From Chara braunii (lineage: Eukaryota; Plantae; Charophyceae): a stretch of 64,000 nt of DNA. The notes beneath the pieces were generated by a model. It did not search any database, was not told where the DNA came from, and worked only from the letters and a program-made list of their open reading frames with translations. A program made the position numbers and the translations under genes. The DNA is taken from positions 1,114,905 to 1,178,904 of the forward strand of contig BFEA01000044.1 in assembly GCA_003427395.1 (NCBI GenBank), in the 5' to 3' direction. Positions within the stretch are counted from its first letter, which is position 1. Each line of letters opens with the position of its first letter. Shown piece by piece: positions 19,389 to 55,637 of this stretch.

Positions 19389-19484
19389 CCATGTATACCC
19401 GAATAGCATTATAGCTGTATCTGGGCCAACGTTCATACTGAATGCAGTGCTCATGACCGGGCATTCTATTCGGGTGCACACCGG
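19389..19484. mobile_element. Short pogo-like MITE (degenerate) upstream of GolS
   Basis: TA|CCATGTATACCCGAATAG...CTATTCGGGTGCACACCGG|TA. Confidence 0.55.
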
Positions 19485-25429: not shown

Positions 25430-26075
25430 TTATTTTTGTTGTAATTTTCTGCTTAGTATGCAAAAATCATGAAAAATGCAATCTTGTTTTTAGTATTTTC
25501 CCATCGTTCTCTCAGATCTGTTTATATTTGTTACTTGATGAGTTATGTGAATTCTGACCCTTCAATCCTTGCCCCTTCCATTTCCAGTGTGCACTTATGT
25601 CTTCAAATAACCCATAATACTGCCCTCCTTCCTAACTCAAACAGGTTCGACGTGAATGGGTCTAGAGGGGCGGCGCGCCAAGCCCCACATAGTATGGTTT
25701 TCCAGTCCCGTGACCACTGTGCCTTTGTGCCCATCTGCTGCTAGATGCGGTTCCACCATCGCCAGGCCCACACTGCACCTCGGCACTTCATGAAAACGTG
25801 CTCGATAGTTTCAAGGATTTTCTTGGCAGGGAAATTGCCCACACACCTTTTGCACCATGGGACAGCCAGACCACGTTGTTTTAGACTGGTTCTGTCTATA
25901 AGCCAGTCGTTTGTGGGGAGATACATGTGGGCTATTTGCCATTGCAGGGAGACTATCTTTGCGGGGCTAACCCTGGTTCCTGCGAACCATCGAATGCGTC
26001 GCATATATTTTTGGTGGATGTTTAAACGGAGCGACAAACGATTTCTGACTTGCTCTCTCATATTGCATGCGATGA
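25430..26075 (-). mobile_element. 3' fragment of an L1-like LINE (C-terminal zinc-binding zf-RVT region)
   Basis: ORF 25741-26061 (-): W..AH..LPT...PWCKRC....ETIEHVFMKC..A...W is the CCHC motif following LINE RT; boundaries approximate. Confidence 0.75.
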
Positions 26076-26273
26076 TCTGAAATGGGGCTGAAGATGAGGT
26101 CCTCCTGACTGATCAGTCGCTTTGCTCGTTCGCCTAAGACATTGAAATAGGTTCAGAGATGAGGTCCTCTCACTGATCTGGTCGCTTTGCTCGTTTGCCT
26201 AAGACATTGAAATGAGGCTGGAGATGAGGTATTTCTGATTGATAGGGTCCCTTTGCTCATTTGCCTAAGACAT

Positions 26274-26471
26274 CTATGTTACCGCGCGCTCATTAAACGC
26301 GCGTTCCGCGTTCAGTTTATGAACGCAGTGAACGCGCGTTCAGTGAACGCCCCTGAACGCGATTGACGCGTTTGCGCAGGGGGGTGGGCGGGGTGGGGTG
26401 GTGCTTTGGGCAGTGTGGGAAGCAGCAGCGGTGCTTGGGGGGACTTTGGGCATTGTGTGTATGTGAATTTA

Positions 26472-26502
<31 letters not shown>

Positions 26503-32510: not shown

Positions 32511-35500
32511 GGATTTTCAAACTGCTCAAAACGCTCACTTCAGAATTTTCATTCACGAATTTTCAGCTACCCGTTAACCGCTTGTGCAGTCTTAGCGGTC
32601 ACTTGAACACTATGTCCGGTTCTACTTTGTTATCGCACACGAGAGACATGTCCCATTCGTGTTTTCCGGTCGATTTTCCGTGCAAGACAATCCCCGAGAC
32701 CTCTCCCAATCAGAGTATTACACAAGGTAGTACTTATGAAGACACCCACTTAAGTAGGAAAATAACAGACTTGTATCACAAGGGTATCTTTTAAAACAAA
32801 CACCCTCAACCCATACAGCCACTCATGATAACTTTGGCATCGAATACAGGGCAGGGATTTTGCTCTCCAGCACCCAAGCCCAGAAGTTTGACGATGTACC
32901 ACTCCTAGAAACAGTGATTACTGAGTGCAGCGAGCAAGGGTAGGGTGCATTGATAAATTCGACGCTGAGCGTTGGCATGTCGCAAAAACTCGGTAGCCAG
33001 TTATTTTGCACAATGCGGATGACTGTGGTTTACACCATACGTTTAAGGGTCAGACGACACAGGCAGAGTTATCGTCTTCTCACAGAACACCTTACTTTAC
33101 TCCTCCTCCGGGTTTGTATAAGATGATCGACTTACAGGTATTGGTTCACAGAAAAGGTAACCCGTCGTAAGTCAGGTTATATCCAAATCAGAGACACTTG
33201 AGCTCTCAGCTCTCTCTCCCGTCAAACCCATCAAGAGGGGGTGATGTTAGTCTCCGTCAAGCAGAAATTTAGCTAGTAAGAAAGTTATTTTTCTTAGGAT
33301 TTCTTCTCTCCTGCCCATTTAACTGGGTTCTCACGATGACTTACCTCTCCAGTTCCAGTCTAGCAATCAGTCAATCAGAGTAACGCTTACTCCCTTCTTT
33401 GAGAGGGGAGAAAATTCGTACACGGTTTGCTGTACTCCGATCCAATCATAAGAGTAAAAATAAAAATAAAAAACATGCAACTTGTGACCAAATACTTATT
33501 TCCATGATACACAAGTCAACAACATGTCAGTGATGTCACTCATAGTTGCACCACCGCCCTGGAAACCACTACACTGATTATCTCTCATGCAAGGATTGTA
33601 TGTGACTTCAATTATTAGGCTATCTCATGAGCTCACAAGGATTGGCCCCAGCTGACATGACGCTCCCCCCCCCCTTTAACATCAGTACTGGTACTTGCGA
33701 TTATACTTTGAGTGAAGGATTGGCCTCAGAGTGTATGGGTCGACTTTGTTATCCCGTGAGCTTGAGGGACACGTAGCCCTCACAGCGAACTCAGTCACTT
33801 GCGATTATACTGGACAACTTCAAGGGAATCTTTCCCCGTTAGCAACTCACTTCAGAACCCCTTACCTGAGCAATTAGTTCGCTACCATCTGACCAGAACT
33901 CCTTAATACAGCCGCAGGTCCCCACAAAACCAAGTTAACGAGAAGTGAAGGAGGAGATAGTTTGTTCGGTAGTGGCGGTCAACTTCTCTTCGACATTGAA
34001 GCAGTAGAAATGCTATCGGTGGCGAGTTTTCGCGCCTCTGTCTCGACAGTTTTATTCCTTTGTGTCTGGCTATTGTTAATGTCTCGCTCAAAGTTTTCAA
34101 CTTGGGTACCTTCTCAGCTGGTATAAATCGATGTCCAGACCGGGACTGATAGCTATTGACATCAACGAAAAAAAAGTTAAAATGACCCGTCTACAGAGCC
34201 TACCTCCCCTATAATGTGAAGACACCGTGTTAGATCGGCACACTTAAGGTCAAGACCGCGAGTGATCAAATTATTTTCTTCTACAACTAGTAGCAGTCGC
34301 GCAGACTTTACTCACAAAACAGCAAATACCATTACAGAGAATGGTATCCAACGAGTCGTCAACCTCTCATCGCATGCATTCGTATCCCCTCACTTGCTCG
34401 CATACAGCTATACACCTTGTTCGAGCCCCTCAAATCATCAAGACTGGCCCCACTCTAGTATGCTTTTGTACTTCTTTTCTCGTGCTCCGAATGCCTTAAC
34501 TGGTTATTTGCATTTCCCCTACCGCCAACGACGTGGTGTTAACCTTGGAGAATAATGCAGCCTATATGGAGGCTACAATAGCATTATCAACGAGAAGAGA
34601 CACCGTTCTCTCCCATGCACTTGTTTTCACTGCGCGTCTTCTCTTTCTTCTTTCTCCATCGCAACCGAGAGCCAAAAGAAGCAAGCCATTAACAAGTGGT
34701 GCTCGAGGCGGAGAAGTGCCACAGCATTACAACCCTGCGAAGTATATGGAAGACCTCTTACAAATTGACCCTTATTAGCAGCGTGATTGCCAAAATCAGG
34801 AGGTTGACATCAGTCGACTCTTCTCTACATGGATCGTCAAGCCGCCCGTCCCCCGAAAGTGACCAACTGCCAGAGTGAGCTCCCCTCTTGCATGATCGCA
34901 CCGCTCTAATCAGCGTACGCCGCCTGAACGGATGGTCAGCCCCCTCTCACTTCTCGCTCACTTCGTACTCACCCACAACCATAGCGTGGCTTGCTCCTCA
35001 ATATTCATTGTCACGGGCTTGACCCATCCAGATACTGTTGACACCAGTGACTGCTTCTGAGTGCTCTCATTGCAGGCATTGTCTTGATCCCACTTTTTTG
35101 AAGTAATGGTTTCCTACGACATGCACACCTCCTCGTTGTTCCTGCATCGGCAATTGCCAATCCAGTATCACGCTAATCATACATAGACAACACAAGGCAC
35201 ACACGTCGAGTCCCTATCCGCTCATTCTAAGAAGACTACAATGATCACAATCGGTCTATGCACAACAACAGAAAAATTGTGGGCATTTTTTTTGGCGGTT
35301 TATCAAATGTGGCCCCCCCTTTTAAACTGTTGGTTTCGTGTTAATAAACAGTTTAACGGGGGTAGTGTCATGTGTTCCACCAAAAGTGAAGGAACTCAAC
35401 GTTGATAACATATGTCATAAACATGCGACACTGTGTTCAACACTTGTTCAGTAGTTGAAAAGTTGTTGACAAGTTGTTGACAAGTTGTTGAAATGTTGTT

Positions 35501-35547
35501 GATCAACTGTTGAACATTTCAGATATTGTTGGGAATATCTGAAATTT

Positions 35548-35599
<52 letters not shown>

Positions 35600-35739
35600 T
35601 CTTCCCTCCCAAACTGATGATGTCAGAGAACTGGCCCTGTTGCTATTTATCACCTTCATCTTACCTTGTGTAGCTCCTTTGAACCTTGAATGCAGCGCCA
35701 TAGGCAAATGCCTGATGGATGTGAACGAAATGTCTGATA

Positions 35740-35809
35740 GTTGGCTACCGGGTGTCAATTTCCAACATCATGCCCCTGCATGACAAGAACATGGCACGCA
35801 GTAGTCAAT
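35740..35809. promoter_or_regulatory. 70-bp bipartite site A (18-bp arm, 34-nt spacer, inverted 18-bp arm)
   Basis: GTTGGCTACCGGGTGTCA-N34-TGGCACGCAGTAGTCAAT; function unknown. Confidence 0.7.
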
Positions 35810-36199
35810 CAGTCGTGTACTTCTCGCCCAACATTAAAATGAACATGTTTTCTAGTGTCTGCCCAATACTACTTTGTGATATTATATTCAACATATTTGG
35901 AAGTGCGTAATCCGTTTTCTGCTCATTTTTATCAAACATGATTCATGTTCTTGCAAAATCGTACGTTGACATATTTTGGCCCACATTACACATGACGCAT
36001 TGCGTATCCTTGCAAGACAGACAACAATGTGTACAATAAATTGATAGTGAGTATTGTGAGATGCGAAACGTAAATGCTACGTGATGGTCGAAACACATCC
36101 ACGACAGGTCATGTACAAAACCATTTATTAAATAACACATGTTTGCTTATTGTACACTCAACCCAGAGGGTTCTCCAGAGTCTTTTTTTTTTAAATAAT

Positions 36200-36252
<53 letters not shown>

Positions 36253-36297
36253 NNNNNNNNNNNNNNNNNNNNNNNNNNNNNNNNNNNNNNNNNNNNN

Positions 36298-36338
<41 letters not shown>

Positions 36339-36498
36339 TTTTACACTTTGGTCCTCATTGGCAATGTGTCATGGCACGGACTGTCAGTGGAGGTGCAGCT
36401 CATGTCCCCTCTAACACCATTGCCCTCCTCCCTCCCCACCCTGACATTTTCCATCCCCAACCCCCCTCGATCCACTTCGGGACCCCTTCTTCTCCTTT

Positions 36499-38461
36499 TC
36501 ACGGCCTTGCGGACAAACTTTCTTCGTCTCTCTCTCTGCCCGCACATTTGTCCACGGTGTGCGCAATGAACTCAAGGTCAAAATCATCATCTGTTGTAGT
36601 CATGTTATTGGCGTCTCCCCTCTGCACAGCAGGCAACCCAGCTCTGTACAATGCGACGGCCTTGTCTGCAACAGAAACAGCACGGTCGAGCTTGAAGATA
36701 GAAAAACTTAAGACTGTGTCTCGGGAGCGGACCGATGCAGCTATCTCTTTCTTGATAGTTGCAAGTTTCTGTATTTGTTCCGCTGCTTTACTGGTCTTTG
36801 TCGTCTGCTCGACTTCACTTTTGAGTACCAGCTCCGCAAATGCTAGTTGCTGCAATGTTACGCCAAGGTTGATTCCATCTCTTCTCATTTGAAAAACTTT
36901 TGTTAGTACTGTCTTGAAAGGAGGAGCGCCCCACGGATCATTGCCGCTCCTTCTCCATGTTGTGTTTCCCTTCATCTTTGCCCGCATCCTGTTGCGAGTC
37001 GGAAGCTGGTGATCCGTTTGAGCTGATCGGACCAGCGACAGACCTTTTTCGGCCCAAAACGAATGCTTCAATTGCCATGATATCTCGCTTCGGACCATTG
37101 TCATAATCCGATTGCATTCCCCGATCACAGCTCGGATTCCGTTCGTTGCCACGTGCAACCGTAGTCCTTCCTCCGCATGTTCTCCTATCAATTTGGCAGT
37201 TGTTTGCAGTGCCGTAAAAAAATTGTCCTCCGATGGGTATAGTGTCGCATCCTTTGCTGCTGAAAAAGCAAAGACCTTCGCCACTGAACGAAACAGTCTG
37301 TCTTTCATTTTCTTTGTAAAACCCCCGGTTTGTTGCTCTGTTGGTTCGCCAGCATCACCTCCACCTATGCTGCTTCGTCTTTGCAAATTAGTGCAATCTG
37401 GGGGGAAAAAAAAAAGACCAACAGATTGATTATTTAGTAATAAGAAGACCCTCCGCGATATGCGTTTTATGTATTGCATTCAGAAACGAACATAAGACCG
37501 CCACTCCCCCTTCCCGATCCACCCCCGGACACACTTCGTAACCCCCTACCACCCCCAACCCCTTGCCCCCGGCCCCCTCCCCTTCCCCTCCCCCCCCCTT
37601 CCTCCCGCTCAGTGAACCTGGTCGTTTCTGCAGCACTGAAAACGACTGTGCTGAGCACACATAGTGGTGTCTTTATAAGGCGCCCTTCATCTTACCCTGT
37701 AGCGGTACATTCTCCCTCTACACAATTTGTTTGTCATTCGATGAAGTCTCTAGTGCGCCTGCCTTTTTTTCATCAGTTCCGCATTTTGCACTGTTTTTCA
37801 GCAGATGTAATCTCTCTTTCTTCGTCTTCACTGTTGCCTTCCTCTTCCTCTTCGCCCTCCTCGGATCTGTCCGTGTTGTCGCCGGTGCTATCTCCCTCCG
37901 GATTGCTCTCCTCTGCATCGACATCATGGTCAGCGTCACTGTCGTCACCTTCTCCTCGTTCTTGCATTCTCTCATGTTCTACTTCTTCTGACATTTCTTC
38001 GCCGGAGTCTTCTTGTTTGCCTTCCTCCTGAGCGGTGGTTCGTAAATCGTATGACCCTCTGAGGTGGATTGCTTCAGCAGTCCTGTCTTTTCTGTAAATT
38101 ATTTTCTTCTTTTTCCTCTGTTGTTGCAGCTGTGGTTTTTCATCTCGTCTTTTCTTCTCTGGCGCTCTTGGGGGTTGCCTCTCACTGTCGCCGTGTCTCT
38201 TCTGCCGCGGGGGACTCACGACAGGTGATTTGTTATGTTCAACCAGTTTCCCCCTCTGCTTTTTCCGCGGCGGGCAGAGAGCACTGCTTCTGTCCTGCGG
38301 CCTGTGTTGGTCTCCTGTCTCTTGAATTGGGGAATATCCCTTATGCTATGTCTTTGTTTGATTGTCTTCTTCTCTTCCTTTGCTGCCCTCTCCCCCTTCT
38401 CTCTCCTCCCTGTGGACTTCAAGGACTTGCACAGATCCTCGTACCTTGGCTTCGAAGTCAT
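36499..38461 (-). pseudogene. Transposon cargo gene of unknown function: basic/acidic low-complexity N-terminus, Gly/Arg-rich linker, globular C-terminal domain
   Basis: Colinear ORF pieces 38216-38461, 37773-38219, 37467-37658 and 36499-37479; polypyrimidine acceptor (ttttcccccag) near 37400 before the ~300-aa last exon; stops and frameshifts upstream. Confidence 0.6.
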
Positions 38462-38591
38462 TCTCTTCAGCCTTATGAAAAGTTTCTGACATGCACGAAT
38501 TCACAAACACTCACGTTAGACATGGAATGATTTCGGCACATGCAACAACCATTTGTCATCCGCCACCGTATGCGAGATTTTCACACGCAGG

Positions 38592-38637
<46 letters not shown>

Positions 38638-38707
38638 ATGTGACATGAAATACGACATTTTTTTTCTATGATACATCACACATTCATCCATCAAGTAACA
38701 TGCACAA

Positions 38708-38777
38708 GTTGGCTACTGCGTGCCGATTGGCTTCTCTACGACATGTGAGTTTTGTATAATTGCACGCGGTTGTCGAC
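38708..38777. promoter_or_regulatory. 70-bp bipartite site B
   Basis: GTTGGCTACTGCGTGCCG-N34-TTGCACGCGGTTGTCGAC. Confidence 0.7.
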
Positions 38778-38816
38778 TTCGTGTTTCGATGTCGGGTATA
38801 TATCATGCCCTTGTAA

Positions 38817-40033
38817 TTACGAAGTTCCACTCCGTGTTCCGTCTATGAGATCTCCGAAGACATTTTCTATGTCACACGTTGCTGCGGTGTTATATCCTTT
38901 TGTCATTGCAGCACACTGCGCAAAGCGTTGTACCATTGACTGACGAAATTTCTCGACCGTTCGTTCGTTGACCTCCATCGCAGTAACAACTTCTGTTATA
39001 TATTTTGCGATTATGTTCGTTCCCTCAGTCACGTTTGCTAGCTTTCGCATCAATTCAGTTGCCAAGCAACAAACATAAACACCACAGTCCGACGTATTAG
39101 TCTGTTGCGAACATTCCGCATATACTATTTTAGATCCAAGTAGATCTCTGCATGTCACCCACGACGTGTCCACGGTCTCAGGAGTCAATACCCCTGCTTT
39201 GTCTGCCTCGTTGAGGTATTCATACCACAAAAATGTGCGTAATGCCTTCCATTCCTGTCGGACGCTCTGTTGAAAGGAATCCATGACGATCGCAACAGGT
39301 CGTTTCTGCCCATCATTGTCCTCCGTGACTGCCAAAAACCGACCGATATTCAGTAACAAGAGCGATTTCCAATGTTTTTTGTGATTCACAGGGATGAGAA
39401 CAACAGTTATCGTTCGCAGTTCATTGCTTATTCGACGCAGCTTTGCAGGTGTACTCTTGATCCGCGCATGCCATCCTGCTTTCGATGTCTGCGATGACTG
39501 CGGGATGCTAGAAAGTTGTGCAAACATGAAGTGTCATGTTGTCCTCTATAGGGAAATGTTCTTCATAGACGGACTGTAAGTATATATCGATCACGTCATC
39601 GTTCAGCCACTACTTCCCACCCAATCGCAATACATCCTATTTCGTTATCGCTATGGCGTGTCATCTTGATTTTCACGTGAACGGGAACATGGTTCCTCGT
39701 CCACCCTCTCAGGCCTCTTTCCAGCCTCTGCAGCCGTACCTCTCAGCCGATTGCCCCCTGCAATACTGAACAAAGGTTCATGCACCATCTGAGGATATTG
39801 GACGTCATCTGGTACATTTCCGCATACCACGGGTCCTCCAGTATCCTCTTCCATCGCTTCACTGATCTCTCGCTGCTCAACGGGAGCAACGGTTCGGTGA
39901 CACTTGGTCCACATGACTGTTCGTCATTCCTTGCTATTTCTGAACTGTCCTTCGCTTTTGAGCCCATCATACAACCCTTGCCATCTACCCCCTCGTTCAT
40001 TTTGTAAGATTCACTCATCTGAACACCCCTCAT
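38817..40033 (-). pseudogene. Ulp1/C48 SUMO protease-like cargo gene, disrupted
   Basis: WLNDDVIDIY (~39580-39610), LIPVNHKKHW (His), IVMDS (Asp), QQTNTSDCGVYV (Gln, Cys); in-frame TAG stops and frameshifts at ~39510-39650; start position uncertain. Confidence 0.85.
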
Positions 40034-40273
40034 TCTCTGTCATACAACAGATGTCACGGATGATGGACAAATAGTGCAGTGTCAGTCTAAATCGACTTCT
40101 CCACAATTCCTAAAAACGTTTTTTTTTTTTCACTTGCTGTCTTGCCACTTCTCCCACTGTAGACTGTCGTTCTGGCGTTACCTCGACCTCAACATTTCCT
40201 GTCCACATGGCAGTCACATGGCCATGAAGCACATCTTATCAATTACTCGGCTTTAGTGGTAAGTCTTTCGACA

Positions 40274-40332
<59 letters not shown>

Positions 40333-40400
40333 TACTGCGAGGCAGCATGACGGTTTCCTGTGACGTCATGACCTTTTATCGCACGCAAGTATAGACATAG

Positions 40401-40470
40401 GTTGGCTAGTGCGTGCCACCTGCCACTTCTTAAGTCCACGTTCACCATACATGTGCACGCAGTAGTCAAC
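40401..40470. promoter_or_regulatory. 70-bp bipartite site C
   Basis: GTTGGCTAGTGCGTGCCA-N34-GTGCACGCAGTAGTCAAC. Confidence 0.75.
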
Positions 40471-40708
40471 TCTGAAGTTACCTTCGTCATACACACTGCT
40501 TTGATGTACCTTTGTCAAAATTGTTGTGTAAGATGATATAAAAGTTATGCAACGCTATAACACAACCTTGTCCGTGCGAAAAAAACAGTCTCACAACCAT
40601 GTTGTTCCATCTCGCACGATCGTGCCGGTCTGAAATATAGTCCCGCCGCTTTAAAAATCTACCGATATTTGAACTCCATCTTTACAAAATTATTATTGTC
40701 GTTCAAAC

Positions 40709-40772
<64 letters not shown>

Positions 40773-40966
40773 GAAATACAAAAGTTGAATTGATGATGTA
40801 CTATGAAATTGCGACTGCGCCCACCACAGATTATTCTCGGAAAAACGTTCAGCCTTTGAATTTTTTTATTTTTTTTTTCTCTCTAATTCCATGTACACTT
40901 CTAGACTATATATTTATTCAACAAAAAACTCTCTTCCTTCTCTTTTGCATGCTTTTTCGAGCCCCA

Positions 40967-43615
40967 CTATGGTTTAAAAAAATAAGGAACAATGTGAACG
41001 GTCTCGATGATGGTGTCAATCATTATGACGCTACTGTGTTGATGTCCGTTTGCCTTCTCCCATTGCAACTTCTTACAACCTGTTGTGTGTTTCCTTTCGC
41101 TATCCACCTCTTTGTACCATTGCACAAAACAATACCTGTGCATCTCTGCAACACCCCCTGTGCAAGTGTTCATAACGAAAAACATGGCTACTGATGCATA
41201 CCATATGTTGTCATTCCCACCTCTCACTGTAACATCGCTGTGCACGGCTCTCCCGTGGAACTGTGGTGAAGCTCTTGCCGTTTGAATGTCTGCGCCCCTG
41301 TGCGTCCCGTCGTATGTGCAGGTGATAGTCAAGTGTGTTCGAGTGTGTATCACTTGGTCATCAGATGGAGGTTGACAGTCGTTCTCGCTCATGAACGTCG
41401 TGAGCGCAGCTCGAAAATCCTCTCTACAGGGAAGCTCGTTAAGTATTCTCAACGCCGCGTTGCTTATACCCTCCACCTCCGGCAAATACACACCGTCCAT
41501 CTGAAACCACCGGAGTTGTAGAGTTGCGGTGTCGCGCGCTGTGAGGGTATTAATTCCAGTGGTCATGCAGTCTGTCACCGATGACCAATTTTCTGTCGAC
41601 CTTTTTCTTCGTTTTCTCACAATCTCCATCTCATCCTGCAAAGCCAATGAGCGTCGGACACGATTCACCATCTGGGAAGCAGCCATGCGCTTGTTCGATG
41701 CCAGATATGGCTGTTTGCAGAACCTCTGATGATGATGCTCCCACACATCAGCTGCGAAGGTGTCGAGGACACCGGATCGCTCTATGCATGTTCTCAGATG
41801 CATAAGGTCGTGCAACTTCGAAATTTTCCAATTCGAGGTTTGATATTTTCCCATCTTCGTTTTTATACTCGTTATGAAATCACCTATCAATGCGTCACAT
41901 ACATCGAGAGAAGTCGCAGTGTGGGTCGACTTACGAAACACATGTATGTACATTTCCATGAGTTTGATGAAACAAGCGGAAATGGATTTGTCTGTCGCAC
42001 GCGGGATGATATCACAAATAATAAACACGCAAACTGTCATAACAGACCGATTTTGCTTTGCTTCAAATCATCCTTCCCTTGAAAAGAAATCACAACCTAT
42101 GGCCACGGGCAACACGAGCTGCAGGTATGTCCTCACACATCTCTCTTTGATGCTCTGCAACCTCGCATCCATCTCGTGCAATATCTCACTTTGCGTGATA
42201 TCCGGCAACTTCTCATAAGCTGCTGCCTTGAATGCATCTATCATATGCAAGAAAATGTCGTGTTCAATGGTGTGCATACGGTCCGGTTGCAAAGCGAGAT
42301 GGTAATCTAGTTGAGGATCATCACCATGTGGATCCCTGTAGAATCCCCAAAGGTCGTTCTCATGAACATGCTTATGCATGTTCAATTCTGACATTCGTGC
42401 CTCTGCGGCACGACGAATATCGTTGTCCCCATTGTTCAAGCAGTTCGCATCAAGTTGCGTGTCTAGCGTCTGCGATCTCCTGCAGTTGGCGAAATAGGCG
42501 ATGACATCGAAATCGTCTTTGGACACTGTGCATGTTGGACAAACACCGAATTTCACAGTTGCAAGGGCACACCTTTGAGGATAGCCCTGTATATGGTTCA
42601 TGATGAAAGGGTAGACTGTTATCTCGTCGAACTGCTCCGTTGTAACTATCATGCCGCCATGGGATGCCTCCTTTGCGGACCGCAATACTATTGATAACGC
42701 TTTATACAATATCACAGCTTTCCGTTTTCTAAACGCGGTGGAGTGCAGACCCCAACCCTTGTCACGTGGCCGGTGTTGAAGCAAAGGAAGATACGCAAGG
42801 AGTGTGGCGTCCGATGCGCGATCGGCTACTGACATCATCAGAGGATATGCTGACTGCTTTTGATGACCGTCTATATGAATCTTGTCTGAATACAGAGACA
42901 GAGGGATGACATAACGTGTTTTATCATTCGTGTCCACACCCTTGTCCGCTCTGATAACAGTTTGGACATGGTGACTCAACTGGCCCGTGCGAGAGCCACA
43001 TATGTTGATCCCCTCCCCGAGAGGTTCTATTTCGAGGCAAGAAACCGTTTCAACATTGTGAAGTGCAACACATACAAGTTTAGCGAACGTTGTACGCCAG
43101 TCGCGGTACCACAAAATGGCGTGCGCTTCTTCTGGCCAATCATCACTGCGTAGATTATTCTCTTGCCACCCTGCAGCCTCTGCCTGGCGGTTTGCCCATG
43201 TCAGACACTCACGACTGTTACGAAATGCGATATTTTTTGGGTCGAATCTAGGATTCTTGAGGAGTGACAACAGATAGTCAACGTCAGTTTGGGACATGCC
43301 CACACCGCCAATACATGAGAAAATCAACGCCGCAAGTTTGCGGGAGCTGTCGAATGCCTCTGTGTGTTGTTCTTGCTGTTCTTCGGATGCACAGTCTGCT
43401 TCTACATCGAGAGGGGGCTCAACCTCCTCGCTTTCCCCACTGACCAGATTAATGGGATCACTATTTGACGGTCCACCGATAACCTCCCAAACTATCTCTT
43501 GTGTCGTGCTCCCGTCTTCCACAGCGGATGGACATGCCCGCGCTCGGTGTGAGTTCATCGTCCGTAATGACATGAAAAGCCGCCCACAATCACACACGTG
43601 ACTCGCGCCATCCAT
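40967..43615 (-). pseudogene. Plavaka-family transposase, frameshifted near 42070
   Basis: N-terminal zinc finger CDCGRLF...NSH; motifs LWYRD, PLSLYSDK, AYPLMMS, LLAYLP, YPFIMNHIQGYPQ (family DYPE), CPTC, QPDRMH, MDARL, KLHDLMH...IERSG, EHHHQRFCKQPY..SN, RASPQFHG, FVQWY; two frames joined. Confidence 0.88.
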
Positions 43616-43916
43616 TGCAACTACGTGCGAGAAATACAAAGTGATGTCACTTAAGACCTATCGCAGATGGAGCATGCGCGTTCGGTGTGAAATTCATGAG
43701 TTCCTTTCACACTTCCCCCACCCCCGTCCCCCCTTTCCCTCCCGTCGACTCAACACCGCTGTTGTGCACTGCTGACAGATTCCAAGACAACGACAACATT
43801 CCAAGCGGTATTAACATCAAGAATTGTGGTGAATGTTTCGCCTCTTTTTTTTTTTTTTTTTTTTTATTTCGAGGCATGCCACATTTTCTTTCAAAGTGTC
43901 ACATCCTCCTTTCCTG

Positions 43917-43963
<47 letters not shown>

Positions 43964-44310
43964 CATTTAAAAAAGAAAACCATTTATTAAAGTGCGGATT
44001 TGTTGGAACATTTATAAAATAAAAATATTTATAAAATAATAAGTGCGGATTTGTTGGAACATTTATAAAAGAAAAACATTTTTCTGTTGTCATTGAAAAA
44101 AACAGTAATAAAAGATCTTTAACAACACACGCACACACACACTGTATACTTTGAGCAATAGCAAACTTGAACAAGCATTCCACATCATCAACATGAAAGT
44201 CAAAAAGTCATGACCTCCAACCAAAAGTAGAATTGCAACTCGAATCACCCCTTGGGACCCCCACATTTATGCCTGGAAGTCTGTTGGGGCTCATTGCAGG
44301 CTGTAGCCTC

Positions 44311-44351
<41 letters not shown>

Positions 44352-44464
44352 ATGTACACCGTTGTCGAGCACTCGAACACCTAAAATATTGCACATACTC
44401 CGTGCAATGATGGATGTGCAGAATTAATCATGATATGCATAGTCTGTGCATCGAACAACTGCAT

Positions 44465-45907
44465 TCAACGTTGTCCACTACCAATGTCTGTATCACCGCT
44501 GTCCAGCATGGTTTCTGGTGCGCATTCAAGCCATGTGTGAGCACGAAGTATTTCCTCTCCTGTTGATAGTGTCGGGTGCAATGTAGCACCAGAACCGCTG
44601 GCTACAGCCCCGTGTAGGAGGCAACTAAGGTCCAGGCCCCACGTAAGTGATGTTGCGAGGACATCCTCTCTGTTGACCAAGAAAAATCATGACTTCCCCA
44701 TATGTGACCATCTTCTTCCGTTCGAGCATGATCTCATAATGGTCATCAGTGCTGCATACTGGAGTGCGCCCTCAGGTGTTGCCTCCTTCAGCACGACACG
44801 CAACAGTAAATGGGGATTAGAGAATACACGTGTCAACCTAAGAATCGCATGTGCCCACCCTTTTGACGCTTGTCCCCCCCCTGCTTCCATATCCCAGTAG
44901 GCATCATATTCCTCACCCTCCTTGTCACTGCTCACCCTCGACACTTTAGAATAGCGGAAAACACTCGAGTAGCAGGTAGGTCGGTACCTCACTAAGTAGA
45001 GGTAGATGCAACGGGTACTTGACTCGGAGGCCGAGTAGAGAAAGACAAAGACCGAAATTTTTAGTAACCCTAGTACTGGAAGGAAGACAGGCACCGGACC
45101 AAGTCTCAGTGCGTGTCATAGTCCTACCTGACACAATCATCAGTCCAACTGACCCTTCGACCTCTTCCGTTGAGGGGCATTACTATCGATCCTAATCACC
45201 ACGCGCGCGTTATAGTAACGCGTGCACACACTTAACGAAATTTTCTCACCGATTTTTTTTTGCCCCGGCCTCAGTGGCCGAGGAATTTTTGCTCCCAGTG
45301 TCACGCCAAGCGTGCACACCCCTCTTGTTTCCAGACAGGCTACGTNATGGTAGCTGATGTCGTCATCGTGTCGAATGCAACGACATGGCAAAATACCCTT
45401 GTAAGGGTATTTTGTCCAACAACGCCATGTTCTTTTCTTTGGGGCAGGAACAGCAACCCACTGATCAGCAACCTTGAAAGCAAAGCAATGCACACCTCCA
45501 ACGATACCTGGCTGAACACGACCTGGCAGCCAATTCACATCGTACGGGTATGTATCTCCTGCCATTGTCTTTGTCATATTTGCATCAGTGACAATGCATC
45601 CACTGTGAGAACCCTCGCTGCCAACATCTTCCTCGTTTCTCTCTCCACCCACCTTCTCTATCTCACCACTATTCCCTCGTGCGCCGCTATCGTTGTCATC
45701 CACGTCAGCAAGCATCTGCTCAGTTTCCATATGAATTGTTGCGAACACCTCTTCGCATGCAGCACTGGCTGTGCCCCCGCCACTAGTCTGCTGATGAGCT
45801 GTGGTTTCGTTGACCTCACTTGCAGGGGAAAGACCACTTAGAATGGCTTCTGTTTCCATGACGTTGGTATCTCCAGCATTGGCGGTTGTTGCAATTGCGG
45901 GTTCCAT
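44465..45907 (-). pseudogene. Transposon cargo gene of unknown function, frameshifted
   Basis: Colinear ORF pieces 45140-45907, 44687-45094 and 44465-44680; acidic N-terminus then protein-like segments (YPYDVNWLPGRVQPG..HCFAFKV..W; ILRLTRVF.NP.LLLRV). Confidence 0.5.
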
Positions 45908-46350
45908 CTAAATATTTGCACACCATATAAGGTCATGAGTCGACATCGCTGACAAAATGTTTCCANNNNNNNNNNNNNNNNNNNNNNNNNNNNNNNNNNN
46001 NNNNNNNNNNNNNNNNNNNNNNNNNNNNNNNNNNNNNNNNNNNNNNNNNNNNNNNNNNNNNNNNNNNNNNNNNNNNNNNNNNNNNNNNNNNNNNNNNNNN
46101 NNNNNNNNNNNNNNNNNNNNNNNNNNNNNNNNNNNNNNNNNNNNNNNNNNNNNNNNNNNNNNNNNNNNNNNNNNNNNNNNNNNNNNNNNNNNNNNNNNNN
46201 NNNNNNNNNNNNNNNNNNNNNNNNNNNNNNNNNNNNNNNNNNNNNNNNNNNNNNNNNNNNNNNNNNNNNNNNNNNNNNNNNNNNNNNNNNNNNNNNNNNN
46301 NNNNNNNNNNNNNNNNNNNNNNNNNNNNNNNNNNNNNNNNNNNNNNNNNN

Positions 46351-46413
<63 letters not shown>

Positions 46414-46415
<2 letters not shown>

Positions 46416-46747
46416 TGGCTACTGCGGGCCAGAACGACGTTATTGAGTAATGTTTAACCGTAATATGGCACGCAGTAGTCAACCGACTCATTCGTAGGCC
46501 AGAACATAATGACATTGAAGCAGACACTTCATACATGTATACATATATGCATATGTGAGAGAGAGAGAGAGAGGTTGGCTACTGCGGGTCAGAATGACGA
46601 TATAGAGTAACTTTTAACCGTATTATGGCACACAGTAGTCAACCGACTCATTCATAGGCTTAGACAGGGGTTGAATAGGCAAACCTGGCGACAATAACAT
46701 AATGACATTAAAGCAGACACTTCATGCATGTATACATATATGCATAT

Positions 46748-46792
<45 letters not shown>

Positions 46793-47420
46793 TGGCTACT
46801 GCGGGCCAGAACGACGTTATTGAGTAACGTTTAACTGTATTATGGCACGCAGTAGTCAACCGACTCATTCGTAGGCTGAGACAGGGGTTGAATAGGCGAA
46901 CCTGGCGACAAGAACATAATGACATTAAAGCAGACACTTCATACATGTATACATATATGCATATGAGAGAGAGAGAGAGAGAGAGAGAGGNAGAACATAA
47001 TGACATTAAAGCAGACACTTCATACATGTATACATATATGCATATGAGAGAGAGAGAGAGAGAGAGAGAGGTTGGCTACTGCGGGTCAGAACGACGTTAT
47101 TGAGTAACGTTTAACCGTAATATGGCACGTAGTAGTCAACCGACTCATTCGTAGGCCAGAACATAATGACATTAAAGCAGACACTTCATACATGTATACA
47201 TATATGCATATGAGAGAGAGAGAGAGAGGTTGGCTACCGCGGGCCAGAACGACGTTATAAAGTAACGTTTAACCGTATTATGGCACGCAGTAGTCAACCG
47301 ACTCATTTATAGGCTGAGACAGGGGTTGAATAGGTGAACCTGGCGACAAGAACATAATGACATTAAAGCAGACACTTCCCCCATGTATACATATGTGCAT
47401 ATGAGAGAGAGAGAGAGAGA
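46414..47420. repeat. Tandem array of ~160-280-bp units, each holding a 70-bp bipartite site (D1-D5) and an (AG)n tract
   Basis: Sites at 46414-46483, 46574-46643, 46791-46860, 47071-47140 and 47229-47298; all 18+34+18. Confidence 0.9.
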
Positions 47421-47426
47421 GGTACA

Positions 47427-48330
47427 TCAAACTTCTTTAACGAGACATTCAGCCACGATTTTACACCTCTTATAGAGTGTCCTTAGCCGGTCGTTGATGT
47501 GGAGTCCTTTCTTGCAATGCTGACAATCGATCACCTGCGCACGACGATCTGCGTTTGCTACGACCTTCGACATTATCTCTTTTGCAAAAGAAATGACAGT
47601 CCGCCACGAGCCTTGCCATTTGTCGTTTATTCGCACTTGACACGAACTGTTCAAATATTTCTGTGGTCATAGGTACTGCTGACTCATCATTGCTTGTCAA
47701 CAGTGCTTTGCTAGCGAGGACGCAAGGGAAATTGTGTCGAATTTTATGAGATTGAAAGGATTTGATATCGTTGCAGTCTAGCAGCAAGTATGTCGCTGGC
47801 TCACAGACACTTCGACCTGTGTTGCAATCGCACATCCGCATAGTGAGATCATCTTCCCGGCTTGCATTCGCAACTTGCGCATTGTATGTTTTCATGGTTT
47901 GTACGGGGTTCGGCGTTACAGACAATTGTCCCGATGCCAGACGATCTCTGGTGTACTGAAGAGAACATACAATATCGGCGCAGCTGTTGAGCAGAGACTT
48001 CAAGTTCCCATTAAGGCCATCGCATCCCATATGTGCACCATAGGTCTGGAGGCGATGGTTAAGAGTGTAGTGGTCTATGGTCTTTGTGCAATGACGGATG
48101 CAGTCATCGGCAAAAGACAAGAGGTCTACAAGACTTTTCGACAAGGCTGTCAGCGGACCGCTGTTCAGATCCTCACTATCGTAAGACGCCCACCCATCCC
48201 TGACCACACATTTGTCTGCAGAGGAACAACATGTGACATCCCGTTCACAAGCGTTTTGTGCTCTGGCACCGAATGCAGTGTCCGTGTGAAGAAGAAGTTT
48301 TTTCCGATAGCATTTAACCTCAGCAACCAT
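47427..48330 (-). pseudogene. Cys-rich transposon cargo ORF of unknown function (5' part in the N gap, frameshift near the 3' end)
   Basis: 286-aa open frame 47470-48330 plus overlapping 47427-47654 with DCQHC; same strand as the other cargo genes. Confidence 0.5.
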
Positions 48331-48797
48331 ATTCTGGTACNNNNNNNNNNNNNNNNNNNNNNNNNNNNNNNNNNNNNNNNNNNNNNNNNNNNNNNNNNNN
48401 NNNNNNNNNNNNNNNNNNNNNNNNNNNNNNNNNNNNNNNNNNNNNNNNNNNNNNNNNNNNNNNNNNNNNNNNNNNNNNNNNNNNNNNNNNNNNNNNNNNN
48501 NNNNNNNNNNNNNNNNNNNNNNNNNNNNNNNNNNNNNNNNNNNNNNNNNNNNNNNNNNNNNNNNNNNNNNNNNNNNNNNNNNNNNNNNNNNNNNNNNNNN
48601 NNNNNNNNNNNNNNNNNNNNNNNNNNNNNNNNNNNNNNNNNNNNNNNNNNNNNNNNNNNNNNNNNNNNNNNNNNNNNNNNNNNNNNNNNNNNNNNNNAAG
48701 AAAAAAATGAAGAAGGAAGGGGGAGGGGAGGGGTTGGTAAGTCAACGAATCAAATACCTTTAGAAGTTCCACTCCAGCTCCCCGCAACAACTTTGTC

Positions 48798-48870
<73 letters not shown>

Positions 48871-49109
48871 GCCCAGGCTTTTGCAGATGCTTAAGCGTTG
48901 GAGAACGTCACACACACGTGGACAGCACAAGGACAAGGAGGTGTTGATGGGGACACGAAGCACGAAGGAGAAGGTGAAAACAGAGAGGGTGAAGATGAAG
49001 ACAACGAAAAACACCAACCAACGTCAACAAAAATGAGGTGAAACTAGTGTATAGACAACTAGGTACCGGTAGGGAAAATAAAAAAAGCAGGCTCAGCCCA
49101 GGGCAACGA

Positions 49110-50090
49110 AGAGCAGGCCTTGGAAAAAAAGTACCTATGGTAAACAAGGCAAACGAAACAGTAGTACTGGCACAAAAGGTCAAAATGTTGTACTAAGAAA
49201 ATAGAAAGCCAAAATGGAGAGGCAACGTGGTGGCACCGCACAAAAAAAAAAAAAAAAGGAACCGGTCCACACCGCAAGGGGGCAGAAGAGAGAGAGAGTT
49301 ACGGAGGGTCTAGTGTCGTGACAAAAAAATAAATGGCCTCGACACAAAAACAGAGAAAACGGATACAACACATCCCCACCTAGGCCTTGCAAAAAAGTAC
49401 CTGTGGTATACAGGGCAAACAAAACGGTACTACTGGCACGATGCCGTGAAAAAATGTTTTAGTATGAAAAAGGAAGGCGAAAATGGAGATCACCAGGAGA
49501 TGCACCGTGGTGGCACCGAACGAAAAAAAAAAAAAAAAAAAAAACCGGTCCACGCCGCAAGGGGGCACAAGAAAGAGAGTTGCGGAGGGTCCTGCATCGT
49601 GACCAAAAAATTAACGGCCTCGACACAAAAACAGAGAAAACGGACCTGTGGGAAAAAAAAAAAGGGGGCTCGGCCTACGCCAACCAAGCGCGGGCCTTCG
49701 AAATAAAAGGCACCGTAGCCGATGCCACCATAGGTCACACGGGACCTTGATAAAAAAGGCTAAACCGGAGACGCGCCGTAGCCGATGCCACCATAGGTCG
49801 CACAGGACCTTGACAAAAAAGGCAAAACTGGAGACGCGCCATTTCCAATGCCACCATAGGTCGAGACACCAACGAAAAACGTAGGGCCAGAATGAAGAGG
49901 CTCGTCGTACACGTGCCAGGGCGAAATTGGAGACGCGCCGTACTCGCACGGGACCTTGGCAACAAAAAGGAACCACGCCGCAAGGGGGCACAATACATGA
50001 CTTACGCAGGGTCTAGCGTCATGACAAAAAAAAAAAAAAAAAGGCCTCGACACTAAAACAGAGAAAACGGACATGCGGGGAAAATAAAAA
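49110..50090. repeat. Subterminal repeats of the Plavaka element (~270-300-bp duplication and 63-bp tandem units)
   Basis: GGCCTCGACAC.AAAACAGAGAAAACGGA three times; CGTAGCCGATGCCACCATAGGTC at 49714 and 49777. Confidence 0.75.
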
Positions 50091-50239
50091 AAAGACATCC
50101 GACAAAATATATCAGATTCAGGAAGGATATATGTGTTTTATTTTTTTTTTGCCTTTTCGGGTCTCTAAAGTTAACCCCCCATTTCTTTTTTTTTCAGCCT
50201 GCGCATCCGCAACATCAAGCCTTCCTGATAAACATCAAC

Positions 50240-50309
50240 GTTGACTACTGCGGGCCACCCCGGCACAAGCGGCCGCCATTTGCAACATCATTTCCACGCA
50301 CTTGTCAAC
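50240..50309. promoter_or_regulatory. 70-bp bipartite site E
   Basis: GTTGACTACTGCGGGCCA-N34-TTCCACGCACTTGTCAAC. Confidence 0.7.
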
Positions 50310-51225
50310 TCCCAGATCCGGTGAAGTTAAAAAAATAAAAATTCTCCAACATGGACGTGTTGGAATCATGTTGAACATATATTGATCAACAGTTGAAAAC
50401 ATATAGCCCGCATGTTGACAAACGGTTCAAAACATCCAAACGGCCCGTCAAAACGATTGGGCCAACCATTCCACCCTCTTCATATGTTGGTCCCAACTTG
50501 TGTCGAAGTTGGAACCATGATGAAAATTTGCCACAATTTTTCTGTTGAAGTGCTTAATATGTCCCTGGTTGTGATCGTGCGAGGCGTATTATCCCAAGAC
50601 ATGGACAAGACAAACATTTGGCAATCGTCCCTAAGAGCACGTCTGACTTTCGTGTGTGTCCCTCTTCTCCCCTCACTCTGGACCCTTGTAACCACTTAGC
50701 GGCCTCAGTCTCGTCGTCGTTGTGAGCTGGCCTCCTAACCGTCTGCCTGTGGTTCTGCAGATGGGTGGCCCCGACGCCCTTGGTCCAGCCCGTGCCAGGA
50801 CTGGGTATCGGCCTCCAAGTCGCTCGCATCGCCCTCTGCTTCCGTATCACAATCTAGGTGTCGTTGTTCCCTTTCTGCTGTATCTGTGGACGTCTCTCCT
50901 TCGAGGTACGAAACCGTCACTTTTATTTCGTCTGTGACCCCGTCTCTCTTGCACCTCCTCTCAGCCTAATCCTTGGCCTCCGTGATGGCGGCCTTCAATC
51001 CCTGGTCCGCTCTCATTTCTTCTTCTTTTCGCCCTTCTACGTTTACCTTCAGTCTTGCCTCCTGATTACAGTGGCGGTAATCCAAGATGGTCGTCACCAC
51101 AGATACCTACCTACCTGTGTCGGTTTGAGGTACAGGCACCCACTTATTATTAGTCTTTCGAGCTTTTCTTGGAAGCATGGCATGGATTACTTCAGTGCCG
51201 TAGCACCTAGTACTAGGATGTTAGC

Positions 51226-54109: not shown

Positions 54110-54760
54110 AATTCCGGCAGCGGTTCTCGTAGAAAAATTGTTCAAGAATTTATTATCGCTCGAATATGAAAACTGAAATGACTTTTAACTCCAGAAAGTC
54201 AAATTTTGTCAAACTCCCTGAATTAGTAAAGGTTTGGGCAGCATCTCCTTTAGAGAATTAGACTTCCCGAATTTTTACCAAGCCAGATAAGAACTCAAAG
54301 TAAGACTTGAGTTTCTACTATGATAAAATTTAACTAACTCCTTAGATTTGTAGAAACTTCGGCAACGTTTTCCATAGAAAAAGTAGTTTTTCAAAATTTT
54401 TACAAGGCGAAGTACAGAATCTGAAACGATTCTGACTTCCCAAAACCTAATTTTGTCTAACTCTCCGAATTAGCAAGATTTCGGGCAGCACTTCTCCTAG
54501 AAAGGAAGGTTTTTCAGATTTCTATTAAGTCATATATATAACTTAGACAAAGTTGAACTTTGAAGAGTCAAAATTTGACTAACTCCTTGGTTTTGTACAA
54601 ATTTCGGCGTGGGTTCCCGTAGGGAAAGTAGCTTTCCAAAATTTATACACAGCCAAATGAAATAAATGATCTAAAAAAATGGGAGAAATTGACTTAAGTA
54701 AAAAAAGTTAACTCAGAAAATGCAGGAATTGAACTAACTCCTATAGCTGTAGCAAGTGAC
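54110..54760. repeat. Diverged ~122-bp tandem repeat (~5 units)
   Basis: AACTCC...TT.GGCA.C....TAGAAA...ATTT.TAC pattern at ~54113, 54233, 54357, 54480 and 54602. Confidence 0.65.
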
Positions 54761-54942
54761 GAGCAACTAAAATAACTACTTATCAAATTAAAACTCATAC
54801 TAAATACATTTTTCACTCAGCCACATGCAAATCCATACCACAATAGTAAGTACTCTCACTCACTCCCAATGTTAAACCTTATTAATAATAGTCAATGATC
54901 TCTCAACGATTTATCTCATATACCCAGCTTACATAAGGCGTA

Positions 54943-55637
54943 AAGCTAGACCATTCAACTTAGAAACAAAGTCTAGCTTAGCCATTGAATATACACAAAC
55001 ATATGACACTACTAATTTTCTCTTCTTTGGGAATGTGACTAGGTCATTCAACTTAGAAACAAAACCTATTCGCACTGAACTGTTTAAGTAGTCAAGTTAT
55101 ATATATTTTTTTGCTCTTAGTCTTTTAAGATAACATAGCACTGAACCATTTAACTTAGAAACAAAGTTCATCCTACCCAGCTTACCACCAATTAATATTT
55201 TTAATTAGTACTCTCTATATTTTGATAAGTTATAGTCATACCATTCAACTTAGAAAAAAGTTTGACTAGCCTGTTCATAAGTAAAATAATAATAAAGTAT
55301 AAGTCTATTTTTTCCTTGGTTCCAACTAGTGTGTGACTCCTGACCAAACCATTCAACTTAGAGACTAAGTCTGACTGATTCCCTCAGGAAAAAAAAAAAA
55401 AAAAAAGTTTGAGTTATCCTACTTAGAAACAAAGTTCACTCTCACTTAGAAAACCCAAAATTAACCAAAGTGACCAAACCATTCAACTTAAAACAAAACT
55501 TGGTTACTGAAAATGCATTCTCAAGCAGCCATCGCAATAGAGAGCAACCAGACCATCCAACTTAGGAACAAAGTCTGGTCCACTAGGCAATTAAAACAAA
55601 CATAGCACTGGGTCATTCAACTTAGAAACAAAGCCCA
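54943..55637. other. Array of nine stem-loops with conserved loop CATTCAACTTAGAAACAAA and variable, self-complementary stems
   Basis: Loops start at 54952, 55045, 55147, 55242, 55350, 55415, 55480, 55554 and 55614; flanks pair within each copy but differ between copies. Confidence 0.85.

Follow-up and report, generated by a model that had tools for sequence, protein, structure and literature searches.

A 70-bp two-armed site of fixed spacing in the intergenic regions of Chara braunii Plavaka elements, a candidate protein-binding site

Every intergenic region of a Plavaka/CACTA element family of Chara braunii holds one to 16 copies of a 70-bp site, in which two 18-bp arms face each other across a spacer that keeps its length while its sequence changes. 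We think it probable, if only just, that this unit is a composite dyad-symmetric protein-binding site on double-stranded DNA, specific to this family. The sites were recognized in one element copy within the window, i.e. the whole 64,000-nt stretch of DNA analysed, and were then followed through related copies.

The host element in the window is an internally deleted Plavaka/CACTA copy of 15.3 kb, with all its genes on the minus strand. It is bounded by the TIR CACnnCAACAGAAAAATTGTGG at 35261 (35261-35285, plus strand; the 3' end in gene sense) and an inverted copy at 50552 (50528-50552, minus strand; the 5' end). The ends begin with CAC, and the same TIR ends bound the related copies L002, L007 and L012. 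GTTG-rich subterminal repeats extend from the 3' TIR to about 35550, followed by an (AG)n microsatellite (35551-35596) 144 nt from site A, which in gene sense reads as (CT)n and directly follows that site. The bases flanking the window copy (...TATG / CTTA...), the one copy checked for this, show no matching 3-bp duplication.

The ORF at 42068-43639 matches the Plavaka-family DDE transposase (PF18759, E = 1.1e-18, Pfam), and the transposase has 23 relatives within Chara braunii. Together with the ORF at 40967-42040, its C-terminal part, which runs on unbroken from the first ORF in L012, it makes up the transposase gene (40967-43639, minus strand); a conserved upstream exon lies at 44539-44935 (minus strand), and the internal deletion starts just past that exon. 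Accessory genes of the Chara element are Ulp1, a histone-H3-like gene, X and Y, three of which are found in the window, all on the minus strand: the Ulp1/SENP-type protease ORF (Peptidase_C48; 38817-39527), gene Y (ORFs 36499-37479 and 37773-38219, spanning 36499-38219) and gene X (47470-48330), the N-terminus of which enters an assembly gap at 48341-48697. Neither X nor Y has a known domain; Y is kept in all subfamilies, with relatives confined to Chara. Pfam found nothing in the element ORFs beyond Plavaka, Peptidase_C48 and Histone, and no recognizable DNA-binding domain was detected in X, Y, ORF328 or the transposase N-terminus by Pfam, PDB sequence search or ESM Atlas, the predicted structures of X and Y (pLDDT 38) being too poor for a fold search.

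A first-pass annotation made from the window alone had described nine 70-bp sites, and all are present, at 35740, 38708, 40401, 46414, 46574, 46791, 47071, 47229 and 50240. The spacer is exactly 34 nt at each, as it had stated, and the five spacer sequences that it quoted, one for each of the loci A to E, are correct. Its arm pattern is matched exactly at only two of the nine; the others carry one to four mismatches per arm, and site E, the most degenerate, pairs at just 13 of 18 arm positions. In the window, 15 arm matches were found against 0.03 expected from shuffles, which yield an expectation of zero whole sites. The claim that no site lies beyond the TIRs also holds, with none outside 35261 and 50552 in the window.

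Site A (35740-35809) lies between the last gene, Y, and the TIR, and its spacer type recurs at the same position in L002, L003 and L007. Site B (38708-38777) begins 39 nt past the Ulp1 stop codon; in L008 and L011, from distant subfamilies, a site whose spacer differs follows the Ulp1 stop by 36-56 nt, and at such a distance from a stop codon site B is probably transcribed. Site C (40401-40470) falls in the interval from the transposase gene end to Ulp1, and (GA)n/(TG)n tracts at 40275-40332 flank it. The five D sites form an array (46351-47428) of 158-217 bp units, each composed of a (GA)n run, the site and a linker. Site E (50240-50309) is 243 nt inward of the 5' TIR, a distance and a spacer type that L002 shares. 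In L010, of a distant subfamily, a site whose spacer differs lies 250 nt inward of the TIR, placing the sites at this end at 243-250 nt. Both subterminal regions hold sites.

Three assembly gaps bear on these counts. The gap at 36253-36297 sits within a (CT)n run and is crossed collinearly by L007 (window 36763-35266 = L007 22280-23763), with no extra site there. The gaps at 45966-46350 and 48341-48697 flank the D array and gene X, and because of the gap at the array edge, the five D copies are a lower bound. L004 and L007 are likewise gapped at the edge of the D array, and upstream of X they have about 450 nt and one further D-type site absent from the window sequence.

Twelve related copies contributed 63 further sites, bringing the total to 72 in 13 copies; these family counts rest on the 13 sampled element loci plus about 90 kb of flanks. 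All 72 are intergenic and within elements, while the ~90 kb of flanking DNA has zero. The sites are syntenic between genes across subfamilies whose transposases are merely 65% identical. The stretch from the transposase to the next ORF upstream is free of sites, as first reported, in the window copy but not in fuller copies, which have one to seven there. The window copy has lost about 6.8 kb at this place (window 45422|44935 = L004 4319|11099), a stretch that in fuller copies holds the histone-H3-like gene together with those sites. In L004, L007, L005 and L012 the last F-type site precedes the transposase ATG by 131-154 nt; depending on the copy, there are 1, 3 or 7 sites of this type. The D array has at least five sites in the window, four to five in L004, at least three in L007 and some 15 in L012; arrays of at least five and of about 15 sites precede the ORF328/histone-like genes. 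Such differences in array copy number between relatives are consistent with tandem duplication.

The half-site consensus is GTTGRCTACTGCGKGCCA, present as two 18-bp copies facing each other with their centres 52 bp apart, or five helical turns. Spacer length is 34 nt in 66 of the 72 sites, 33 nt in three and 35 nt in three, so the broad length distribution that was named at the outset as speaking against a fixed geometry is not seen in the 13 copies. At least 17 position-specific spacer types can be told apart. Comparison of one type with another gives 80% identity in the arms and 28% in the spacers (26% for random sequence); at orthologous positions in subfamilies at 65% transposase identity, arm identity is 69-86% and spacer identity 21-38%, and the flanks of these sites do not align. 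The half-site consensus is unchanged between subfamilies whose noncoding DNA has stopped aligning. Within types, the gap fraction is 0.002 in spacers versus 0.02-0.14 in flanks. Conservation of arms and spacer length alongside changing spacer letters, over 72 sites in 13 copies, bears out the earlier proposal of selection for a geometry.

The spacer is not free in sequence, contrary to what had been supposed. Its position-specific types are conserved among close copies; 13 of 17 types have A at spacer position 12, and 12 of 17 have T at the mirror position, 23. Its A/T content is periodic at 10 bp (family-wise P <=0.004, also after related types were collapsed), and the A/T profile folded about the dyad has maxima at about 5.5, 15.5 and 25.5 bp from it.

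From the conservation, geometry, phasing, position and family restriction of the sites we infer that a protein binds them, and likewise what kind of protein and to what effect. Both arms and the minor grooves of the spacer would lie on one face of the helix, so that a dimeric or higher-order protein could grip both arms with the spacer bent or wrapped against it. The sites may be landing pads for an element-encoded factor that recognizes its own family and switches on or protects the transcription units of the element, like VANC of VANDAL or TnpA of Spm; the same factor may also help assemble the element ends for transposition. A bipartite HTH domain of the Spm TnpA/transposase kind could read the 18-bp half-site. 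The 52 bp from centre to centre of the 18-bp half-sites is unusually wide for a simple dimer, a point against the binding reading. Of the three options raised by the first-pass annotation, a binding site fits best, and a hairpin and a cassette or recombination boundary are unsupported: the absence of arm covariation, the conserved mismatches, the dyad A/T pair and the 10-bp periodicity favour a bound, DNA-bending protein over these two and over a MITE.

An unlikely alternative, though the most serious, is that the site acts as a one-strand hairpin, in RNA or in transiently single-stranded DNA, with the 18-bp stem functional and the 34 nt as its loop; it might give rise to small RNAs, signal transcript processing or a 3' end, or form a structure that a nuclease or recombinase reads. 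Plus-strand RNA of sites A-D folds with z-scores of -3.5 to -6.1, for B and C far ahead of the minus strand, and several spacers contain small internal stems. The gene-antisense (plus) strand folds clearly better than the sense strand because arm pair 5 is G.U there in 29 sites, versus three reversed. The probable transcription of site B would also suit a hairpin, as would a switch of pair 4 from G-C to C-G in a distant array type and a slight excess over shuffle in within-site arm matching, the arms of one site resembling each other slightly more than arms across types (P = 0.025). Against this, the paired share of arm cells is 85.5% both in the sites and on average in shuffles, covariation scores 0.113 versus 0.116 in the shuffle comparison, and just two pairs have changed on both sides. 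Arm mismatches are kept across copies and subfamilies in types A, C and E, as is that at pair 14 of the D type in both subfamilies. With pairing at shuffle level and mismatches conserved, the compensatory change typical of a structured RNA or miRNA-like hairpin is lacking. Moreover, the strand that folds better is antisense to every gene, and the exact length, the mirror-symmetric A/T pair and the 10-bp A/T phasing have no reason in a loop. Rfam has no family matching the sites, and three poly(A) RNA-seq runs, nearly empty here, gave 6-21 reads over 5.9 kb and zero on a site. The fold polarity itself is left unexplained by the binding model.

It is very improbable that the sites are attC- or RSS-like junctions where a site-specific recombinase adds, removes or shuffles genes. 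In attC, strand-marking bases and a conserved asymmetry mark one strand, and the central regions differ in length; the spacer of V(D)J recombination signal sequences has a set length of whole helical turns. The Chara sites share with both the conserved end motifs around a sequence-variable centre, with RSS the fixed spacer length, and with attC an asymmetry, here with conserved mismatches recalling the strand-marking bases, and the occurrence of a site after each gene: within 36-56 nt of Ulp1 in two subfamilies and within 44-172 nt of X. The L005/L012 subfamily, which lacks Ulp1, has two adjacent sites where it would be. The likeness is in logic only. Spacer length is fixed, unlike attC centres, gene-free arrays of 5-16 sites fit cassette logic poorly, and no recombinase domain was found in any ORF searched. 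Shuffling at the sites, which the first-pass annotation had suggested looking for, is not seen: gene order is identical in all element copies compared, and the mapped breakpoints are in microsatellites or genes. Those of the window deletion (45422 and 44935) are not at sites, and those of a duplication in L007 (window 39163, 38093, 37757, 36763, 36298 and 40769) are mostly in (TC)n runs. An integron attC-like site is therefore unsupported, there being no recombinase domain and both sets of breakpoints lying away from the sites.

Least probable of all is a tiny selfish palindromic element or inert remnant, spread inside the transposon and functionless for it: boundaries sharp at 70 bp with unrelated flanks, 18-bp inverted ends and tandem amplification would fit, but target-site duplications are lacking at all five window loci, no copy lies outside Plavaka elements in the roughly 90 kb sampled, syntenic positions across subfamilies mark the sites as old residents and not repeated insertions, unrelated interiors of kept length are unobtainable by copying one source element, and the half-site consensus is constant where noncoding DNA is unalignable. 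A MITE is likewise unsupported, with no duplications at those five loci, syntenic positions and no copy outside elements in the DNA sampled.

Returning to a bound protein, precedents exist in other transposons. VANC binds arrays of a 9-bp motif, all copies pointing the same way, in the noncoding DNA of the VANDAL family to which it belongs; VANC and its motifs diversify quickly (PMC5735166). As in Arabidopsis VANDAL, a family-specific motif is concentrated upstream of and between the genes of a multi-gene DNA transposon, frequently as tandem arrays that vary in copy number among related copies; the VANDAL motif is rare elsewhere in the genome, and the Chara sites are absent from the ~90 kb of flanks at the 13 loci sampled. 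In contrast, the Chara unit is a dyad of 70 bp whose 34-bp spacer is fixed and helically phased, its arms are unchanged across subfamilies, and its host is CACTA/Plavaka and not Mutator. Pfam detected no VANC-like protein among the ORFs of the Chara element.

Within the CACTA superfamily itself, maize En/Spm TnpA recognizes a 12-bp motif, with tail-to-tail dimers. Its motifs, like the Chara arms, occur as inverted pairs of short motifs; they lie near the ends and overlap the promoter, and the element-encoded regulator that binds them thereby switches the element on and demethylates it. At 10-12 bp and restricted to the termini, TnpA motifs differ from the Chara half-sites, which are 18 bp, 52 bp apart and found throughout the element. 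Both Spm TnpA and transposases bind clustered motifs and carry a DNA-binding domain of the bipartite HTH type, and TnpA-like proteins appear restricted to flowering plants (10.64898/2026.08.24.746577); none was found in the Chara element.

The first-pass annotation knew of no such site in Plavaka/CACTA elements, which needs amending: a preprint describes, in giant red-algal Plavaka, tandem inverted-repeat arrays beside a ParB-like accessory gene, PAG3, and proposes them as self-binding sites (10.1101/2025.02.11.637652). As far as those arrays are described there, both are giant multi-gene algal elements with tandem inverted-repeat units adjoining an accessory gene, arm and spacer lengths lying outside the comparison. 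The Chara element has no ParB, 2OG-oxygenase or SET match, and the array neighbours X, ORF328 and the histone-like gene have no ParB match. Unlike the red-algal arrays in that description, the Chara sites also occur singly, dispersed through every intergenic region.

The element is a Plavaka transposon whose transposase is an ORF on the minus strand (42068-43639; PF18759); the 23 transposase relatives found are all Chara braunii proteins. Inverted repeats of the CAC... type lie at 35261 and 50552, the subterminal repeats are GTTG-rich, and the minus strand carries all element genes. In the gene sense the window copy runs: terminal inverted repeat (TIR), site E (50240), X, the D array (47229, 47071, 46791, 46574 and 46414), transposase, site C (40401), the Ulp1 protease (Peptidase_C48), site B (38708), Y, site A (35740) and TIR. 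X and Y are genes without a known domain; each site is a 70-bp unit of two inverted 18-bp arms around a spacer, lettered by spacer type. All nine sites of the first-pass annotation were recovered, each with a spacer of 34 nt. Its exact arm pattern fits two of them; in the others each arm has 1-4 mismatches, decay being greatest in site E. Arm matches numbered 15, against 0.03 expected from shuffled sequence, and shuffles yielded no whole site. Scanning the 64-kb window revealed none outside 35261-50552, as had been noted at first reading. An inner palindrome within one arm, TTGGC-N8-GCCAA, was dropped because it hinges on a non-conserved base. Between site E and X there is an A-rich stretch of nested repeats (49100-50100), which include a ~280-bp pair (49216-49650) and 2.4 copies of a 63-bp unit (49713-49863).

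Relative to the related copy L004 (4319-11099), and also to L007, the window copy has an internal loss of ~6.8 kb at 44935-45422. This took the gene pair ORF328 (no known domain) and histone-H3-like, along with a site of type F, and the window copy is thus non-autonomous or degraded. The same loss explains the earlier remark that no site lies between the transposase and the ORF upstream of it, which is true of the window copy but not of L004 and L007, where the F-type site occupies the missing stretch.

Twelve loci were fetched from the same assembly by way of transposase relatives and compared with the window copy. The close subfamily shows 85-93% DNA identity; in distant subfamilies (~70%) only coding DNA can be aligned, and the transposase is 65% identical. 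A degenerate half-site scan found 72 sites in the 13 copies. Rather than being broadly spread, spacer length among them is 34 nt in 66, 33 nt in three and 35 nt in three. There are at least 17 spacer types, each tied to one element position and recurring there in close copies. Identity between types is 80% for arms and 28% for spacers (26% for random sequence). At the position following Ulp1, for example, the window and L011 agree at 28 of 36 arm positions and at just 9 of 34 in the spacer, with the site 39 nt (window) or 36 nt (L011) from the Ulp1 stop codon. The transposase start codon lies 131-154 nt downstream of the last F-type site at four loci from two subfamilies. The D type is recognizable across subfamilies (19-20 of 34 spacer bases, no indels), and within types gaps are almost absent from spacers and reach 2-14% in the flanks. 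Wherever TIRs could be located, all sites fall inside them, and the ~90 kb of flanking DNA scanned contained none. The sites are thus conserved across subfamilies whose noncoding DNA is unalignable; they are present in every intergenic region, with arrays beside the histone-like gene. We infer that they form a family-specific address of the element, placed in each intergenic region and near both ends.

The full pattern is carried by the best-assembled copy, L012: one site near the 5' end, X, an array of ~15 sites, seven F-type sites, the transposase, two sites, Y, three sites and a TIR. Its array (2477-4201) extends from 44 nt past X to 187 nt short of the annotated histone-like gene and keeps strictly to a period of 110-111 bp. 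Two spacer types alternate along it, the linkers measure 40-41 nt, and one linker type bears a decayed extra half-site. An LTR-retrotransposon pol gene (RVT_1, RNase H, integrase) adjoins this Plavaka copy at 24478-27129.

In the window, one assembly gap (36253-36297) falls within a (CT)n run, and a single collinear L007 alignment across it reveals no hidden site. Two others (45966-46350 and 48341-48697) adjoin the D array and X. L004 and L007 have gaps likewise at the array edge, and upstream of X they include ~450 nt and an additional site of type D. Given this pattern, array continuity is not demonstrable and the five D copies are a minimum. Gaps at nearly all related loci coincide with regions of sites plus microsatellites (N runs in L001, L003, L004, L006-L009 and L011), making all our site counts lower bounds. 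Chara braunii gaps systematically hit the intergenic site regions of this family; site arrays are therefore under-assembled genome-wide, and their true extent is underestimated.

The spacer had been described as free in sequence. This holds between types, which are unrelated, but not for a pair of dyad-symmetric positions (12 is A in 13 of 17 types, its mirror 23 is T in 12 of 17) nor for A/T content, which has a 10-bp period. Family-wise permutation gave P < 0.0002 for this period with 16-17 types, 0.008 with 12, and 0.004 with 10 after collapsing anything 45% alike. When the profile is folded about the dyad, A/T maxima fall ~5.5, 15.5 and 25.5 bp from it, and the arm centres are 52 bp apart, or five turns. 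We give about an even chance to the site being a composite binding site, at which a protein complex would grip and read two long half-sites, with the 34 bp between them bent. We infer, rather than observed, the binding, the protein's identity and its effect. Pfam searches of 20 ORFs and proteins, and PDB sequence searches, recognized no DNA-binding domain in element proteins. The ESM Atlas returned nothing for the transposase N-terminus, homology searches with Y and X found relatives in Chara only, and AlphaFold2 models of both were unusable (pLDDT 38).

A more specific and improbable proposal is that the 70-bp dyad acts as a sequence address at which a histone-fold particle is positioned; this particle, a tetrasome or sub-nucleosome for instance, would contain the H3-like protein that intact copies of the family encode. 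Rotational positions in nucleosomes at which the minor groove faces the histones lie ~5.5, 15.5 and 25.5 bp from the dyad, and the (H3-H4)2 tetramer organizes roughly 70-80 bp; the A/T maxima and the unit length fit this proposal. Immediately upstream of the histone-like gene are the largest arrays, whose period is 110 bp or 158-217 bp. If true, the transposon would carry a private histone together with a DNA code placing it, a self-made chromatin domain that can be likened to the CENP-A/CENP-B-box system, here on a mobile element.

A hairpin presenting the spacer as a loop was another early suggestion. The plus strand, antisense to the genes, does fold (z = -3.5 to -6.1 for A-D; the sense strand folds worse), and type consensuses show a small pairing excess (256 paired cells vs 248 ± 3.7, P = 0.025), mainly from a single G-C to C-G switch in a distant array type. 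The sites are also polar: in the gene sense, the base at position 5 differs between the arms, A upstream and G downstream in 29 sites (reversed in three), so that a G.U pair is retained there on the antisense strand. In an alignment of 42 sites, however, the proportion of arm cells that pair is 85.5%, against 85.5 ± 0.5 with shuffled partners, and only two pairs changed on both sides. Several arm mismatches are conserved among copies, some even among subfamilies, which argues that pairing is not what is kept. A loop has no need of phased A/T, fixed length, the dyad pair or the five-turn arm spacing, all of which are required of duplex DNA bent, along one face of the helix, against a protein. 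At neither gathering nor permissive thresholds did Rfam place a family at the sites; its few matches are microsatellite noise. Three poly(A) RNA-seq runs of Chara braunii gave just 6-21 mapped reads each over 35300-41200, none on sites and with unusable ends. One chimeric read, common to all three runs, joins 40129 to 37579 (37579-37596 and 40112-40129, with CCCCCTC between); it has loose ends on both sides, and its likely source is another copy, or else an unrelated transcript that shares short matches.

Cassette or recombination junctions, also raised at first reading, would predict shuffling at the sites. Gene order is otherwise constant among copies, no mapped breakpoint falls at a site, and both the window deletion and the L007 duplication break away from them; Pfam found no recombinase domain in the ORFs searched. 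The L007 event (12109-21487) is a segmental duplication covering site C to Ulp1, with parts of Y interspersed and edges that lie mostly in (TC)n runs. A free-standing 70-bp MITE is contradicted by the absence of target-site duplications at the five window loci, by syntenic positions and by the lack of copies outside elements in the ~90 kb of flanking DNA scanned. The (GA)n/(TC)n runs, considered as part of the unit or as a mollusc-type satellite, are neighbours only, since such microsatellites are common genome-wide, differ in type from copy to copy (L005 and L012 have (CA)n) and are missing from the L012 array.

Large multi-gene DNA transposons need several genes expressed despite host silencing, and to our knowledge only two such systems are understood, VANC of VANDAL and TnpA of Spm, both from flowering plants and both using short words. 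As composite binding sites, the Chara sites have these as their closest working analogues. VANC acts on its own VANDAL family, binding motif arrays in the noncoding DNA and removing silencing (PMC5735166); Spm TnpA and transposases bind clustered motifs through a bipartite HTH domain, activating the element (10.64898/2026.08.24.746577). On this reading the Chara sites are a variant of this known kind, transposon self-recognition motifs. They are distinguished by the 18-N34-18 dyad, phased spacer, depth of conservation and link with a transposon-borne histone-like gene, and as a streptophyte-alga cis-element, a dyad of 70 bp whose spacer is helically phased is far more elaborate than the VANC and TnpA words. 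The first-pass annotation knew of no such site in Plavaka elements. The array idea does have a precedent, in inverted-repeat arrays adjoining a ParB-like accessory gene of red-algal giant Plavaka elements (10.1101/2025.02.11.637652); the Chara geometry is new, that of the red-algal unit being unstated in the parts of that report drawn on here. Finding the partner protein would provide (i) a third independent case of transposon self-recognition, (ii) a defined pairing of protein and DNA in which the half-sites are long and look programmable, and (iii) a way to ask directly if the element's own chromatin is the target of its family's histone-like and SUMO-protease genes.

Elsewhere in the window, Tandem Repeats Finder detected no tandem array at 54700-55900, outside the element. 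A U2 spliceosomal RNA match lies on the plus strand at 8135-8240 (78 bits; gathering score 46), probably a shortened copy or pseudogene, with the whole 192-position model squeezed into 106 nt.
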